A stretch of 61,654 nt of DNA, the filler included, from Platydemus manokwari (taxonomy: Eukaryota), in the NCBI GenBank assembly GCA_037951405.1. It is 5 parts of 5 records of this genome, joined end to end, with 100 filler letters (N's around TTAATTAATTAA, not from the genome) between each part and the next. Parts side by side here need not be neighbours in the genome. Positions count along the whole stretch, not along the records: positions 32,668 to 48,480 come from JBBMOY011235875.1; 4 more parts are not named here. The stretch is one strand, 5' to 3'. The notes beneath the pieces are model-generated. The model ran no database searches. It was not told the DNA's origin and was given only the letters and a program-made list of their open reading frames with translations. The stretch's first letter is position 1. Each line of letters starts with the position of its first letter. Positions 40,296 through 48,480 of this stretch are shown here, one piece after another. The position numbers were made by a program, and so were the translations under genes.

Positions 40296-41499
40296 TATTA
40301 TTTCATATCAGTTTTGTGGCAAAATTATCTAATAATCTGGAATCATTGTTTAAAGAGAAAAGTTTTAAGGATTATGTTCATGGTGAATGAGAGGGTCATG
40401 ATGGTTTGTTTTACGAATCAATTGCCACTACGTCACGTAGTATATTGATAAGTGGTTTTCGTAGTCTTATCGATTTCAAAAATTTGAATTAGTTTATCAT
40501 AAGGTGTGGTAAATAAATAATGAAAGGTGTTTTGATAGCTCATCATTAACGTTTATGGTAAATTATATTGGACTACAAGCCATCATTTTATTTTTGCTGC
40601 ACCACTGTAATTAAATTAATATTTTTTGATGATTTAATTCATAGATTTTACAACCATCAAGTCTCTCGAATATTAATAAATCTATTTTTAAATTCTTAAT
40701 CTCGTGGTCCATGAAGAAAACCTACTTTAAATGCCACTCTCTAGATTACATCACAGATTTAATATTTAAAGTATTGACTTTTGGATTTCGAACACCAAGA
40801 CCTGGAAAGTCAGCGGCTCCATTTCTATATAATGGAATAATTTTTCTTAAAAATTCTTAAATGTGAAAATCCATAACATGGTTTTATTTTTCGGTTTAAC
40901 TTCAACAATTAGCTATTCGTGAAAATAAAAATAAATTCAATAAATGGAATCAACAATTTTAAAAAAATTGATACACAAATTAGAAAATTTCTTCGATAAC
41001 TTGAATTGTCTATTTTGAGCTCAGCGAGATAAAATTTGATCTAAAATATCGATACATAGATTTCATTAAATATTTCATGATAAATCAATATTCCAACTAT
41101 GGCTGTTTTCATTATTATTAGTTAAGATATTTTAATTTAAAAATAATTCCTTCATATGAATAATTGTTGAGACATAATGATACATGTTTATTTAAGACAT
41201 TTGAGATGGAAAATTGAAATTTAATGCAGAATATCAGTTCGTTTTGTTGTAATGTTATTGGATTATTAAATTACTCCAGTAAATCAAATTAATATGCTGG
41301 GGACCCACTGGCTCAACAAATGCCTCTCAAAGCTCCTACCATATATTACTTAACATTTTATTTTATAAGTAAAGGTAATAATTTTACCATTTTATATTTA
41401 TGATAATTAATGTTTGAAACCAGTGTTCTTCAAAAGGGGAGCAGTCACCCACCAGTGGGTTTAAAAAATTTTAGGGGTTTCGAGAAATTTCACTTTCGA

Positions 41500-44400
41500 C
41501 ATTGGCTTATATTAAGACAAAATATCGATCCAATTTTAAAATTTGTATCATGAATGTAGCCTCAACTATTAACATTCTGGTAGAAAATAGAGACTACATC
41601 ATTAACAACTTCAATTTTAAACAGTTCAAAGATATAAATTACGTTGTCACAATTGCCAAAATTGATGAATCAGTTTATCTATTCGTTTATCGACATATTG
41701 AAGCAACCAGTTCAATTCATCATCTTGAGGGGCCAGAACAAGCAGATAAAAGTAAGTCTGCCGCTACAAAGCTTACAGGATATTTAAAAATATTCTTCTT
41801 AAAAGGAAAAGTTAGGCTTATAGACTTACTAGATACAACGAAAATTCGCACAAAGACTATTGACAATGCAATACAAATCTGCATTGATCAATTTCAGGAA
41901 CATGAAACAAAGACTTTCAAGTTTAAGTCTGATGACTCAGAAACAATGATAAGGCAAGTAGTCAAAAAGACACGTGATATAACACTAGTGATAAATAGCA
42001 AAATATCAATACAAGACATTATCGCCTTCTTCAGAGCATTAAAAATAGGTCCAGAGCATGTCATCTTGAATCCAACAATCACTACGGCTATTTTTGACGA
42101 CAACTGGCAATATCTGACAGTTTTTTGGAAACACAGATCAAATAAAGGAAGCCAAATACATTTACTGCCTGATTCATTCTCAATTTTTCCATCTGTGTTT
42201 GATAATCATCGACGTCGACATATGGGGATACTATGTGTTCAATCCATCATCTGCAAGAAAGAACGAAGATCTCTTTATGTACCATAATAGTGTTGTTGAA
42301 AAGCTCATGAAATTTACAACTATCAACAGTACATGTAAATTCACTCAAAATGAGTGTTCTCATATTACTAAAGGATCTGGTCTTTTCAACAACCTACTGA
42401 TATACGGTTACATGAAAAGTTATGCATTTGAAATACCACCAATGGATTTGAACGTCGATGATATATCAAAGAAATTTGAAGGCTGCTTTAACTCGAAATT
42501 GTTCAAGAACATTTACAGTAAAAGGACAAAAATAATAACAAAAACCGAAACCTTCAATGAAAGACAGGATGATGAATTGTAACCCAGTCCTGGCAACATG
42601 TATTGATTAAGATTCAGATTCAATGAATGATATCATGGCATCAAACATTCCAGTTAGACCAAAGGACCTAACAACCCAATACAAACCATACTTTGGTAAT
42701 AAAAAATTCGAAGGCTACATTGAACATAATGCAGTTCTTAACACCATCTCCGAAAATGTCAAGTCTGATCCAAAAAATAAAAAATCGGTCTCCATTGCTT
42801 GGTTGGACATAAAGAATACATTTCCTAGTGTTCCACAGAACTACATTTGGAAATGTCTGGAGGCCATCGGAGTTGAAGATAAATTTATTAAAACTCTTTC
42901 AGAGCTTTACTCCAACACTACGACATAATGTAAATGTGGTCAAATTGTTACTCCACCAATCAACATCAATGTTGGAGTTAAACAAGGCTGCCCAATATCG
43001 ATGCTGCTCTTTTCACTAGCAATTAATCCTTTATTGCTAACACTGGACGCAGCAAACATTGAAAAAGTCGAAATATTAGGCCAAAAGATAAAAATTCTGG
43101 CTTATGCTGATCATCCAGCTATTGTTGCAAATAATGCCAAAGATCTGCAAGGACTTCTCAACATAGCTAGTGAAGCTGCTAAACAAATCAATCTGCAATT
43201 TCAGCCTTCAAAATGTGCGTACATAACAATACCGGACGATAAATGAAAAACCAGCAGAATCTCAATTGATGGCAAGTTCATTCAAAAATTTGAACCTGGA
43301 CAATTCTTTGATCACCTTGAAGTTCCTGTTGGAGACAAAATAGATCAAAATCGATACAAGATCACCCAACAATTCATCGACGATGCAAGCGCAATAAATG
43401 CATCTGAACTCCACAAATATCAGAAATTAAAAGCAGTCAAAACATTCCTCCTTCCAAGACTAACATTTCCATTTCGAACTCGGGAAATAAAGAGAAATGT
43501 TTTACAAGAACCATCAAATGGACAAAATAACACAAGACTCGGAAACCTAAGTACAAAGCTTCGAAAAATCATGAAGGAAATTGTAGCAGTACCAAACCAA
43601 TCACAAAACTGCTATCTGTATGTATCATCGGAAAAGGGAGGCGCAGGACTACGAGATTTGTATGATGAGTACAATCTCCAACAAATTGTACGAGCATTCA
43701 AGCTTTTAAACTCGCGAGATGAAAGTGTCACTGAACTTATCAGAAATTCACTGAGGTTTGCAGCTTGTCCTCGTCTCCGAACAAAAAACCAATCATTAGA
43801 ATGGCTAAATGGACAAGTAGACCCACAATCAAACAAACATGCGTGCAAAACATGGTGGGTCTGAGTTAGATGAGCAATCACATATTTCAAACCTACCCAC
43901 AAACAACAATTTCATTCGAATGTAGAGATGGATTCTTCAATATCAGACTAACAGATGCCAGACAAATAACATCAGTCATACAAATATGCCATCTTAAATA
44001 AATCACAAGAATCATACACGAAACCGAGCACGTATCTTATCTGCTGCAATGGGCGACAAGTAACGCTAGCAACTATCTATGCCAAACAGTGAGCCACAAC
44101 ACCAAGCTCAACAAGCTAATCTACAGTGGTGAAATTGGCCCGTTTGCCTTCATCCACAAAGCCAAAACAAACACATTTCCAGTCAACGCGGGACCAATGA
44201 ATAGAGATCCCTTGTAACAGGAAATGCAGAAGGTGTCAAGCACAAGAAGAAACAATGGCACATGACCTTCAAGTGTGTATACTAAACAGCACACTCATTT
44301 CCAGCAGACACGATGCTTGTTTAAAGATCATATATCATACAATACAAGACCCAGATCTCACCATCTCAATCAATGAGATAATCCCATATCTCAAAGGTTG

Positions 44401-44930
44401 TGGTGAGGTCCAGAATGCGCATTGATATTTATATTGCAAACGTGTCAAAGAAAATAATCTACCTTGCTGATTTGAAGTGCCCGATTGATCAACCAGATAC
44501 AATCGCTACAGCAATATTCATGAATGAAGCTCACTATCAAAGTTTGGCAGTGAAAGTATGAGAAGCAAAACCAAGGTCGAGTTACTGACAATAATAGTCG
44601 GTTCTCTCGGGACAATTCCAAATACCTCATTATCAACACTCAAAAAGATGGGAATACACGAAGATGATTTATCGGCCATTGCAGCAGAATTATCAATCAC
44701 CTCAATAAGATACTCGGCAAGAATCTGGCATCTGCACTGCTCCAATATCTATATCGGCAACGAGGAGCCATAATGAATGACTGGTGTGTATGCTTGTTGT
44801 ACGAATTGTTTTGTTTTTTGTGGCCGCGCAGATTGAAATGTAAATTTCAAGGCTTGCCCATGCTGGCATATAATCTGATTGTACATAAAAAATTAAGCGT
44901 GTACATCTGTGTATAAATATAAATAAAATG
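41500..44930 (+). mobile_element. decayed RLE-type non-LTR retrotransposon (R5/NeSL/R4 group): 5' ORF region, RT, CCHC knuckle, restriction-like endonuclease, short 3' UTR
   Basis: RT motifs EGYIEHNAVL, IAWLDIKNTFPSVP, GVKQGCPISMLLF, LAYADH (YADD mutated) and PSKCA. Knuckle CRRCQAQEETMAHDLQVC and RHD. RLE motifs LADLKCP and IIVGSLG. Many stops and frameshifts; AATAAA near 44922. Confidence 0.9.
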
Positions 44931-45999
44931 AATACACTTCATTAGCCTGTAAAAGAAGTTGGATCTTGCTAGTATCCACCAGTCTCTCTTCATCGGTAAC
45001 CGTCCCCTGGCGTGACTTTTATGTGATATGTTGTTATCTTTGCCGTTGTCTAACTTCCAGGTGCTGATCCTGCTGGATATTGATTACTGATTTGACCATT
45101 AAGAGAGTGATTCCGGAATGTGATTGTCTGACGATTTAGTTTTCTTTATAATAAAGTGATTCCAAAGTATAATTTTGACATTCAGCATTGGTGAATAATA
45201 GGAACAATATTAGAAAAAACATAAAACTAAACCCTTTAGCTCAATCAATCGAAACATATTTTGAACTTCTGCAAGTAGGCCAGATATTCTTCAAGAAGAT
45301 AACAATTGTTATTTCTCAATCCAGTCACAATTAACAGTACGGAATAATCAATAAATTTTGATTGATTTCATATATATAAAAAGCCAAGAAAACTCAATTA
45401 GATTGACACATGCACTTAACAAAATAACAACCGATAGTCGATCAGATAGACTCGGTGAACAATAAATGATCGGCAAGCAATTAATTTTTAAATACAAATA
45501 ACCTTATGATGTTTTTATCAAATTTCAAAGCGATACCACATTATTGAATTATAATATATAATAAAAACAAATTTTAAGTTATTTTCCCTTAGTGGATAAC
45601 CCTTGTCATCTTACCATTAAACCTTTTTTGTTTATTGCTTTAGTAATATCTAATATAAGTTATTAATGTACATTATTCATAAATATTCATTGTCAACGAT
45701 TTATAATTTATATATCTCCGGTTGGACCAGTGTCGATCAGTCCACAATGTAATAATTTTAATAAATAATCAACCATTAAAATCCTAATGTAAAACTTATT
45801 AGATAATTAAAGCTTATAAAATATTTTCAAAATCAAAGTTCCGTGGAATTCCTATTGATTTATTAAGTTTTATTGAAAATATTTTTTTAAAATAATTACT
45901 GTAAATGAAAAATAACAAATGAATATAATAAATAAGAGTTCAAATATTTTAAAGGCATGAATAATAATATCATGAATGATAAATAAATTAAAATAATAT

Positions 46000-48027
46000 T
46001 TATACATCTGGCCTAAAGAATGAAGCTCTTCGAGAAGAAGTGGTTGCCTCATAGTCTAACATATTTCTCTTCATTACATTTATGCAAGGTCCTAAAAGTC
46101 TTTCAAAGCTTTCTCTATCAAGTACAGCGATTTTGCATTTAGTTTTGGCAATGATAGTAGCAGCTCGAGGTTTGCGATTAATTAAGGCCATTTCACCAAA
46201 GTATTTTCCGGTGGTGAGTTCACCAACCGATTCAGATTTCGATCCTTCTTCGAAATCAATAAAGATTTCGGCTATTCCCTCTTCAATAAAATACATTTCC
46301 AAACCTTCCTCTCCTTGCTTAATTATAGCCTTTCCAGGTTCATATACTCTTGTTACCAAGGCATCTGAAACATTGTTTCGTTCAAATGAACTTAATTCTT
46401 TTAAAAATGGAACTTGAGCCAAAAGATTATCATACATCAAACGTTTTTGGAAAGCCTTTTTCAGAACTATCTTTCGGAACATGTCTCTGCTCATTGCCCA
46501 AAGTAACCCATTTGTTTTAGCAATAACAGTAGCAGACCTTGGTGTATTATACATAAGTGCTAACTCTCCAAATGATCCTTTATTATCATACTGAGCCACT
46601 ACAGTGTCAACTCCATTTACCGGAACAATGATGTCATACAATCCATTATCGATAACATAAAAATTGTCACCATCCTCTCCACGTGTAATAATAACATCTC
46701 CTGGAACAGCAACCCTTTGAAACATAGAATTTATTACGACTTCTAATTGCTCATCATCTAAGCAACGGAATAACAGTATATCTTTACAACAAGCTCTTAA
46801 TCTATCTCTTTGTTCGTCAGTTTTTGTATAATCATGTATATTCTCCTCATCCAACAAGTCTTCGTCCTCATCATCATCATCATTTAATTCTGGGTTGAAT
46901 TTTCCGGCACTTACACTTTTTCTTGGCATATTGGATTTTTCCGCAGGTGGAGTGGCTAATACACTACTTTCGTCTTCACCATCCTTCTCATCACCAAAAT
47001 ATGTCTTTATAACATTGTTCATGTAGTCAGTACATTTTGGTTCAATAAAACCTTTAAATGTATCAATATCAATAGATAACACTTTGACATTTGTAATGGA
47101 TACAACGCTAGCTATTCGAGGTTGATCATCTAAAAGTGCAAGCTCTCCAAAATAACCTCCTTCATTTATTGAAGATATTTCCTTACCATCCTGCAATACG
47201 CTCACAAAACCTTCGTATAACAAAAACATTTCTTTACCTTCATCATTTTCATTTATAATTACTGCATTGGCTTCGTAAGATTGCAAAACCAATGAATCGA
47301 TAACCATGCGTTTTTCGTAGGACGATAGTTTTTCGAAAAGTTCCATATCATCGATAAAGTCTTTGTATTCGTTTCTTTTGTTTTGTATTTGTTCAAAAAT
47401 ACTAGAATCGATATCTTTTCTATTAATTACTAATAACTTTCCAGCAGATTTTGCGACGCACTTCAACTTTTCTTCTTCCTCTTCACCAAAATATCCACAG
47501 TTTGATAATTCTCCAACCTTCATCTTTCCAAAAGGCAGTTCAGCAAACAGCTCATAATTTCCTTCTTGAACAAAATATATTTTGTCAATTCCATCGCTTG
47601 TAATAATTTCACCACTTTCTACTGGTTTCTCTTCAGCTGAATTGACAATATTTTCTAACATTGTTTTATCCATACTGGTAAACAATTTACATTCTTCGAT
47701 GATTTTACCAGGTGATTTAACTGACCCTTTGATAGACAATTTCGTCTTGTTATCTGCAGCACCTTTATTTAACCCAAAACCAAATTTTTTCTTTTCTTGA
47801 TTATCTTGATCTTCAGGAGATTTAACATTTTCCTCTTTCTTCTCTTTTGATTTTCTATCAGACAGCCAATTTATACAGAACTCAACAAGATCGGTTGGTT
47901 GTGTTCGCAAAACGTCAACTGCCATATCTTGAAGTAGCTCACGAAACCCATTTGGAATTGTAATTTCCTTATTACACTTTACGTTGTTTTGATTGTTGAG
48001 AGGTGAAATATTATTGACATTTATCAT
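46000..48027 (-). CDS. intronless PKA type-II regulatory subunit-like protein with one D/D domain and four CNB domains
   Basis: Likely ATG at 48027. RIIa D/D motif IPNGFRELLQDMAVDVLRTQPTDLVEFCINW. Phosphate-binding cassettes GYFGEEEE (broken), GYFGELALLDDQPRIASV, SFGELALMYNTPRSATV and YFGEMALINRKPRAATI. RII-type FERLLGPC near the C-terminus. The ORF is uninterrupted. Confidence 0.92.
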   Translation of the reverse strand: MINVNNISPLNNQNNVKCNKEITIPNGFRELLQDMAVDVLRTQPTDLVEFCINWLSDRKSKEKKEENVKSPEDQDNQEKKKFGFGLNKGAADNKTKLSIKGSVKSPGKIIEECKLFTSMDKTMLENIVNSAEEKPVESGEIITSDGIDKIYFVQEGNYELFAELPFGKMKVGELSNCGYFGEEEEEKLKCVAKSAGKLLVINRKDIDSSIFEQIQNKRNEYKDFIDDMELFEKLSSYEKRMVIDSLVLQSYEANAVIINENDEGKEMFLLYEGFVSVLQDGKEISSINEGGYFGELALLDDQPRIASVVSITNVKVLSIDIDTFKGFIEPKCTDYMNNVIKTYFGDEKDGEDESSVLATPPAEKSNMPRKSVSAGKFNPELNDDDDEDEDLLDEENIHDYTKTDEQRDRLRACCKDILLFRCLDDEQLEVVINSMFQRVAVPGDVIITRGEDGDNFYVIDNGLYDIIVPVNGVDTVVAQYDNKGSFGELALMYNTPRSATVIAKTNGLLWAMSRDMFRKIVLKKAFQKRLMYDNLLAQVPFLKELSSFERNNVSDALVTRVYEPGKAIIKQGEEGLEMYFIEEGIAEIFIDFEEGSKSESVGELTTGKYFGEMALINRKPRAATIIAKTKCKIAVLDRESFERLLGPCINVMKRNMLDYEATTSSRRASFFRPDV

Positions 48028-48480
48028 AATAATATATTCATGATAGCAATTGTAAATAATTTTAATGAAATATTTTAAAATTATCAATATTATCGTAATT
48101 CGAATAATGTTTAATTCCTTATTACGTTATTTGAATAAAATCCATTCTTAACTTCAAATCTTATTAAAAGAATTATTATTATTATAAGAAGTAAGTTTAC
48201 TAAGAAATTCATAATTTTAAAGTTCGTTTTCAAATATTTCACTATAGAAAGAACTGAAAAGATCAAATAAATTGTTAATTAATAAAAATAGATTATTATT
48301 TTTCTATTAAAAAAGATAATTTAAAAAAAATAAAAATGCCATTTGAAAATTATTTTTCAATGGATAATAATGGGGTGATTCAATATATCAATTAATTAAA
48401 ATTATTATATGCAGTGATCCTAATTATAATAAATTATCTTCATTTATTATAAAACTTATTGTTAGGTAAGATAAAAGGAA

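Follow-up and report, generated by a model that had tools for sequence, protein, structure and literature searches.

The window analysed here is a stretch of 61,654 nucleotides joined from five records of the genome of Platydemus manokwari (GCA_037951405.1), and it carries, in the part taken from JBBMOY011235875.1 (positions 32,668 to 48,480), a gene for a regulatory (R) subunit of cAMP-dependent protein kinase (PKA) of the RII type. A single minus-strand open reading frame (ORF) spans 46000-48087, with its first ATG at 48027, giving a protein of 675 aa plus stop. The coding sequence (46003..48027, stop codon at 46000-46002) is complete without the need for an intron, and its product is colinear with a 670-aa ortholog, P0001 (UniParc UPI0005FF18AC), which begins at the same Met and aligns with it through to the C-terminal end at 64% identity. 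PKA R subunits are among the most conserved animal signalling proteins, and their plan of a docking/dimerisation (D/D) domain, a linker and two cyclic-nucleotide-binding (CNB) domains is treated as fixed. The protein does not match this plan of ~400 aa, as it holds four CNB-fold domains in 675 aa: an RIIa D/D domain is followed by a disordered linker, an extra CNB pair (A' and B'), a second disordered linker with the inhibitor site, and the canonical RII CNB-A/B pair. Based on the analyses below, we consider it reasonably probable that the gene encodes a functional, lineage-restricted variant of flatworm-type RII with an inserted A'/B' module, for which ligand binding by B', inhibition of the catalytic (C) subunit, docking to A-kinase anchoring proteins (AKAPs) and a role as switch or buffer are predicted.

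In a Pfam scan the protein matches RIIa (PF02197, residues 27-54, 34.5 bits against a cut-off of 22.4) and cNMP_binding in four stretches (215 bits total, E 8.6e-65); the same scan detects no kinase domain, and the ORF stops 13 residues past CNB-B. A hidden Markov model (HMM) of the RII pair, built from the CNB-A/B pairs of ~115 canonical RII proteins and comprising 257 model positions, matches residues 406-662 (E 5.7e-118) and, in addition, residues 105-346 (E 1.4e-42, model positions 9-254). As the model is matched almost end to end, residues 105-346 represent a complete R-type A-B pair and not two stray CNBs. The N and C halves of the protein align colinearly over 242 residues at 27% identity (E 3e-32). 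The full-length AlphaFold2 model (predicted local distance difference test, pLDDT, 78.5; predicted template modelling score, pTM, 0.46) contains three folded units, i.e. D/D (28-68), the N pair (~105-345) and the C pair (~400-660), parted by segments with pLDDT <50 at residues 69-100 and 347-375. Since folded units alternate with low-pLDDT segments, the protein resembles a string of beads, and the inhibitor site is part of the second disordered linker. The initial annotation of this locus had proposed a single ORF of about 675 aa for an RII-like PKA subunit, in which D/D, an additional CNB pair, a linker and a canonical RII pair follow one another, and had expected RIIa plus four cNMP_binding matches from Pfam. 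The ORF list returns exactly its coordinates, the Pfam result agrees, the motif pairs it had quoted lie within the alignment of the halves, and Pfam, HMM, alignments and the tree described below all bear out the assignment.

The features of the gene, all on the minus strand, are as follows. An N-terminal extension of ~21 aa (47965..48027) precedes D/D; it is not found in other RIIs, is conserved with P0001 and is predicted to be disordered (pLDDT <50, residues 1-18). The RIIa D/D domain itself (residues 22-58, 47854..47964) is defined by Pfam, alignment and the model helices at 28-42 and 47-68 (pLDDT 82-95), and its I-T-I-P motif aligns with I-Q-I-P of RII-alpha. Linker 1 (residues 59-104, 47716..47853) is disordered and poorly conserved. 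Its sole motif in common with P0001 is KKKFG[F/I] at residues 79-84 (47776-47793), which might be left over from a duplicated inhibitor site, or else represent a short linear motif.

Pseudo-CNB A' (residues 105-222, 47362..47715) and CNB B' (residues 223-346, 46990..47361) form the extra module, and they differ in the state of the phosphate-binding cassette (PBC). In alignments the PBC region of A' reads FGEEEEEKLKCVAKS where other CNBs read FGELALMYNTPRSATV; it is five residues shorter and lacks the Arg. The PBC of B', in turn, reads FGELALLDDQPRIASV, and B' retains Glu295, Arg304 (in the sequence RIAS) and Tyr343, which aligns with the B-domain capping Tyr. Scored alone against Pfam cNMP_binding (PF00027, gathering cut-off 27.5 bits), A' reaches 22.6 bits and stays under the threshold, whereas B' reaches 68.9 bits. 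An AlphaFold2 model of residues 108-350, computed from a 75-row alignment, is of high quality (pLDDT 91, pTM 0.83) and shows two beta-barrels linked by a long B/C helix, with the PBC helix absent in A' and clear in B' (pLDDT 94-98). Searched against the PDB with Foldseek, the top matches of the N module are PKA R subunits only, with the best E-values for RII-beta, and the module superposes at a TM-score of 0.83-0.87 on cAMP-bound RI-alpha, Euglena R and PfPKA-R. Hence, alignments, Pfam scores and model helices concur with the earlier proposal that A' has lost its PBC and B' has kept it. A' is a pseudo-CNB with the beta-barrel fold maintained; judged from its residues, it is probably unable to hold a cyclic nucleotide and would serve as a scaffold, while the motifs of B' indicate that this domain most likely binds cAMP.

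Linker 2 (residues 347-405, 46813..46989) is acidic and disordered and holds the inhibitor site N-M-P-R-K-S-V-S-A-G (residues 366-375, 46903..46932), identified in alignments with RII sequences at the expected position before CNB-A. Ser371 occupies P0, Val372 P+1 and the invariant Arg369 P-2, and P-3 is Pro368, where at least 90% of the 37 RII-type sequences compared have Arg. The site of P0001 reads PRQSVSAG, with a single basic residue. Met367, directly ahead of the inhibitor site, is kept in P0001 and could act as an internal start for a two-CNB product without D/D. The altered P-3 position, Met367, the N-terminal extension and KKKFG[F/I] are differences from other RIIs on which the initial annotation had not remarked. 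The C-terminal pair is canonical: CNB-A (residues 406-530, 46438..46812) with PBC residues Glu488 and Arg497, and CNB-B (residues 531-662, 46042..46437) with Glu612, Arg621 and the capping Tyr659, all in columns that are invariant across RIIs. Compared to canonical metazoan RII (RII-alpha and RII-beta; Macrostomum, Schistosoma, Opisthorchis), the RIIa D/D, a putative substrate-type inhibitor site with Ser at P0 and the CNB-A/B pair with its PBCs and capping Tyr are common to both. The protein differs by ~300 extra residues (linker plus A'/B') between D/D and the inhibitor site, by the 21-aa N-terminal extension and by Pro for the P-3 Arg, and is 675 aa long as opposed to ~375-420 aa.

Several minor elements accompany the coding sequence. 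Five codons form an upstream ORF (ATG AAT ATA TTA TTA TGA) at 48036-48053 on the minus strand, described as overlapping the main start codon in another frame, and an acceptor-like ttttcag lies ~230 nt upstream on the same strand. Flatworms use spliced-leader trans-splicing. Downstream, ~125 nt past the stop codon, an AATAAA-like sequence on the minus strand (45868..45878) reads as a candidate polyadenylation signal.

The affiliation of the gene was determined from a maximum likelihood tree of 65 CNB pairs (IQ-TREE, LG+C20+F+G4 with posterior mean site frequencies). The C pairs of the window protein and P0001 join the RIIs of Macrostomum, trematodes and Cichlidogyrus (support 93/95), this flatworm clade is nested in the RII-type group (support 80/90), and the tree does not put the gene inside Neodermata. 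The best named database matches are likewise flatworm RIIs, with 48-57% identity over the C half, and on these two grounds we designate the protein a flatworm-type RII. Low G+C and a small number of exons per gene resemble what has been reported for Gyrodactylus salaris (33.8% GC, PMC4040987), which would be no more than a guess at its affinity.

The origin of the A'/B' pair is less clear-cut. In the same tree it sits on a stem of 4.2 substitutions per site attached at a deep node, and approximately unbiased (AU) tests reject neither a sister position to the gene's own C pair (p 0.35) nor a grouping with RI-like pairs (p 0.24). With phmmer, RII, RI-like and protist R pairs all score ~105-122 bits against A'/B', so that no relative is preferred, and the own C pair falls outside the top 30; among PDB matches, RI-alpha reaches ~105 bits and RII ~80 bits. 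Signature columns in A'/B' comprise five of RII or flatworm-RII type, plus three common only to the own C pair, against none of non-RII type. This is at most a weak hint at an RII origin, considering that non-RII sequences reach 3-8 RII signature matches by chance in the control. Internal duplication of the gene's own pair would be the simplest reading; the trees do not discriminate between this and other origins.

The initial annotation had interpreted the halves as an old retained duplication and not as an assembly stutter. The sequence is sound in the latter respect: direct DNA repeats within the gene are limited to one chance match of 21 nt, a Logan contig of 3334 nt from the sequencing run X1 covers 44869-48202 with 0 differences and an even depth of 14.6, and P0001 is colinear. 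X1 behaves like genomic DNA, with even depth over gene and intergenic DNA and an adjoining high-copy repeat, and it may be the window's own assembly source; its contig therefore provides consistency, not independence. As to the former, the proposal of an old, diverged pair that has been retained is supported, while its descent from an internal duplication is not established by the tree and the AU tests. Retention is evident from the comparison with P0001, in which identity amounts to 67% in D/D, 22% in linker 1, 49% in A', 62% in B', 63% in linker 2 with the inhibitor site, 86% in CNB-A, 77% in CNB-B and 23% in the C-terminal tail. A'/B' evolves faster than the canonical pair and far slower than linker 1 and the tail, and the contrast of 49% and 62% with 22% in linker 1 indicates that the module is under constraint. 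Within the module, the PBC of B' is nearly unchanged between the orthologs and is the best conserved stretch. In addition, the ~2 kb frame stays open in both species, in a genome of ~70% A+T. The slower evolution of the module relative to linker and tail and the open frame together speak against both neutral decay and a split into two genes.

These data also bear on the notion that the module is a decaying duplication relic heading for loss, with a conservation that merely reflects short divergence. The loss of the A' site, the failure of A' alone to reach the Pfam threshold and the very long branch of the pair are all compatible with such decay. However, linker and tail have fallen to 22-23% identity at a divergence equal to that at which the module retains 49-62%, ~730 nt are without stops or frameshifts in either species, and the module is modelled at a pLDDT of 91; we thus regard a relic as extremely improbable.

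The layout is found in two sequences only, the window protein and P0001. When the N module was searched with HMMER against 1.84 billion cluster representatives, 17,698 CNB proteins were retrieved, with P0001 as the only specific relative. A word-based search for fragments with residues 60-400 gave no match above 31% identity, and a scan of metagenomes at the Joint Genome Institute (JGI) with N-module patterns gave no match. A literature search did not turn up any report of a four-CNB RII.

Repetition of R-type CNB pairs is not rare elsewhere, where R-like proteins have 4 to 14 CNBs, as exemplified by proteins with four (P0021, P0024), six (P0002) and at least twelve CNBs (P0121-P0123), and by P0130, P0141 and others. 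In those with four Pfam stretches all four are seen in a whole-protein scan. The likeness to the window protein consists in an R-type CNB-A/B pair that is repeated in one polypeptide, and the differences are considerable. RIIa is absent from all 15 tandem multi-CNB proteins scanned with Pfam, and several have an inhibitor site per pair, whereas the window protein combines RIIa with a single inhibitor site. Most group with non-RII (protist/fungal-like) R subunits; P0002 adjoins the RII clade, and its third pair forms a very long branch inside that clade. By HMMER, phmmer or tree, none of the tandem proteins is specifically similar to A'/B'. We note that these proteins form a large and apparently undescribed population with 2 to >7 tandem R-type CNB pairs and lengths of up to 3779 aa, some of which start with an N-terminal, myristoylation-like MGCxxS.

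In P0003, P0021 and P0024 each CNB pair is preceded by an inhibitor site of the RRxG/A type. By analogy, the A'/B' module could be a second C-subunit-binding unit, with KKKFG[F/I] as a relic pseudosubstrate and two C subunits per protomer, as presumed for the protist tandem-R proteins. The motif is indeed the only conserved one in linker 1 and lies ~30 residues upstream of A', roughly at the position of an inhibitor site. Nevertheless, this is highly improbable. Lys takes the place of Arg at P-3/P-2 of the motif, and its P0 residue is Gly. In A', the PBC surface through which known holoenzymes engage the C subunit is missing. The spacing, too, falls short of the canonical one, and the N3A helix is cut short.

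In design, the nearest described analogue is the apicomplexan (type III) cGMP-dependent protein kinase (PKG), which has four CNBs, one of them a non-binding pseudo-CNB kept as a structural element (PMC6628679). Both proteins have four CNBs per chain, one of them degenerate, which leaves three with predicted or demonstrated nucleotide binding. In apicomplexan PKG the third CNB is the dead one, in the window protein it is the first. PKG senses cGMP, carries its kinase domain in the same chain and has no D/D, whereas the window protein has D/D and no kinase domain. The tree assigns PKG-like pairs to its non-RII part, and they are not closely related to the window protein. A different remodelling is known for the PKA R subunits of kinetoplastids, in which the N-terminal region and the ligand properties of the CNBs have been changed in one lineage. 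There, D/D is replaced by other domains and the ligand of the canonical CNBs is changed; the window protein retains D/D and the canonical CNBs and has an additional CNB pair.

Certain observations weigh against a functional variant of the kind proposed here. P0001 is a database prediction of unrecorded provenance, and as only two sequences carry the module, purifying selection is read from a single comparison between two proteins. In B', the PBC Arg is followed by Ile, compared to Ala in PKA and Thr in PKG; given that ligand binding is deduced from motifs, this makes the affinity and specificity of B' uncertain. Inhibition of the C subunit may be weaker or different due to the loss of the P-3 Arg and the single basic residue in P0001. 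Finally, among the public sequencing runs searched for the gene only X1 carries it, and no RNA run was found. The last point, together with a conserved Met367 directly upstream of the inhibitor site, would fit a 675-aa protein that is rarely or never made, the locus mainly giving a two-CNB R subunit without D/D from Met367, or separate N and C products. We consider this clearly unlikely. No stop or frameshift separates D/D from the C pair in either species, even across the 46-codon linker 1 with its low conservation and in a genome so rich in A+T that open frames decay fast. Moreover, the conservation of D/D is sensible only if the domain is attached to something, and P0001 begins at the same Met.

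For the intact protein, the favoured functional RII variant, we propose the following mechanism. The C half, with inhibitor site and CNB-A/B, would bind and inhibit the C subunit and release it on cAMP, like any RII though perhaps with weaker pseudosubstrate docking, while the RIIa domain would dimerise the protein and dock to AKAP helices. The window itself encodes neither a C subunit nor an AKAP of this organism. The linker that normally joins D/D flexibly to the inhibitor site here contains a folded tandem CNB module of R type, with A' as a probable dead scaffold and B' (via Glu295, Arg304 and Tyr343) as one probable extra cAMP site. As B' adds one site to the two of the C pair, three cAMP sites per protomer and six per dimer are predicted. 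Tandem CNBs of R subunits adopt either an extended or a compact state depending on bound ligand, so that a ligand-sensitive tether and/or local buffer is the most economical hypothesis for the module. Specifically, ligand on B' would shift A'-B' between the two states and change how far and in what geometry the tether holds the R:C unit from the AKAP anchor; alternatively, or in addition, the module may provide a tier of local cAMP buffering or cooperativity. The most far-reaching version, tentative and in our view rather doubtful, is that the anchor-to-R:C tether is itself a switch operated by cAMP via B', with effects on anchoring, activation threshold or the geometry of the holoenzyme, and that it would yield, in combination with a weakened inhibitor site, a two-tier anchored PKA with three cAMP sites per protomer. 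No description of such a two-tier, three-site anchored design was found for any PKA.

Another role can be envisaged, in which the extra module would serve, independently of ligand, as a spacer or a platform for protein docking, e.g. by fixing how far the C subunit lies from the AKAP or by binding a partner. A' and B' would then be kept for their fold, the PBC of B' would be structural, and cAMP would not be sensed. Conservation of A' at 49% despite the loss of its site suggests that a ligand-free CNB fold is evidently useful here. A pseudo-CNB is retained as a structural element in apicomplexan PKG (PMC6628679), and the unusual Ile after the PBC Arg of B' would fit as well. On the other hand, B' keeps every canonical contact residue that was checked, its PBC is the part of the module that is best conserved between the orthologs, and dead CNBs, such as A' itself and pCNB-C of PfPKG, typically lose contact residues. 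A pure spacer is thus unlikely, albeit the alternative to which we would give some weight. A role in tuning the shape of the holoenzyme and the behaviour of isoforms is ascribed to the R-subunit linker. An RII that has been selectively retained with a pseudo-CNB and a probably active CNB in this linker, and with the P-3 Arg lost, would represent a natural experiment on how linker architecture and the number of sites shape cAMP cooperativity, anchoring and buffering. Were the source a parasitic flatworm, a lineage-specific PKA regulator might also appeal to those in search of parasite-specific traits. The significance of the finding is bounded by the occurrence of the layout in two sequences and by the recurrent multiplication of CNB pairs in uncharacterised proteins.

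The surroundings of the gene hold three further features. On the plus strand, a fragmented reverse-transcriptase element occupies 41500-45000, with ORFs broken over several frames and a weak RVT_1 match at 42623-42925. The depth of Logan contigs is ~220-2830 over this element as compared to 14.6 over the neighbouring gene, which identifies it as a high-copy repeat of the genome. Further away, low-complexity DNA rich in A+T (GC content 0.23) at 32705-33211 contains long ORFs with Asn/Ile runs on both strands and is probably non-coding. An intronless ORF of 479 aa at 37469-38908 (plus strand) is importin-alpha-like, with an importin-beta-binding (IBB) domain and Armadillo repeats. In databases, importin alpha-7 of Saccoglossus alone is related to it at E <1e-5; as this nearest protein is 19% identical, the ORF represents an extremely diverged copy or stems from a fast-evolving, poorly sampled lineage.

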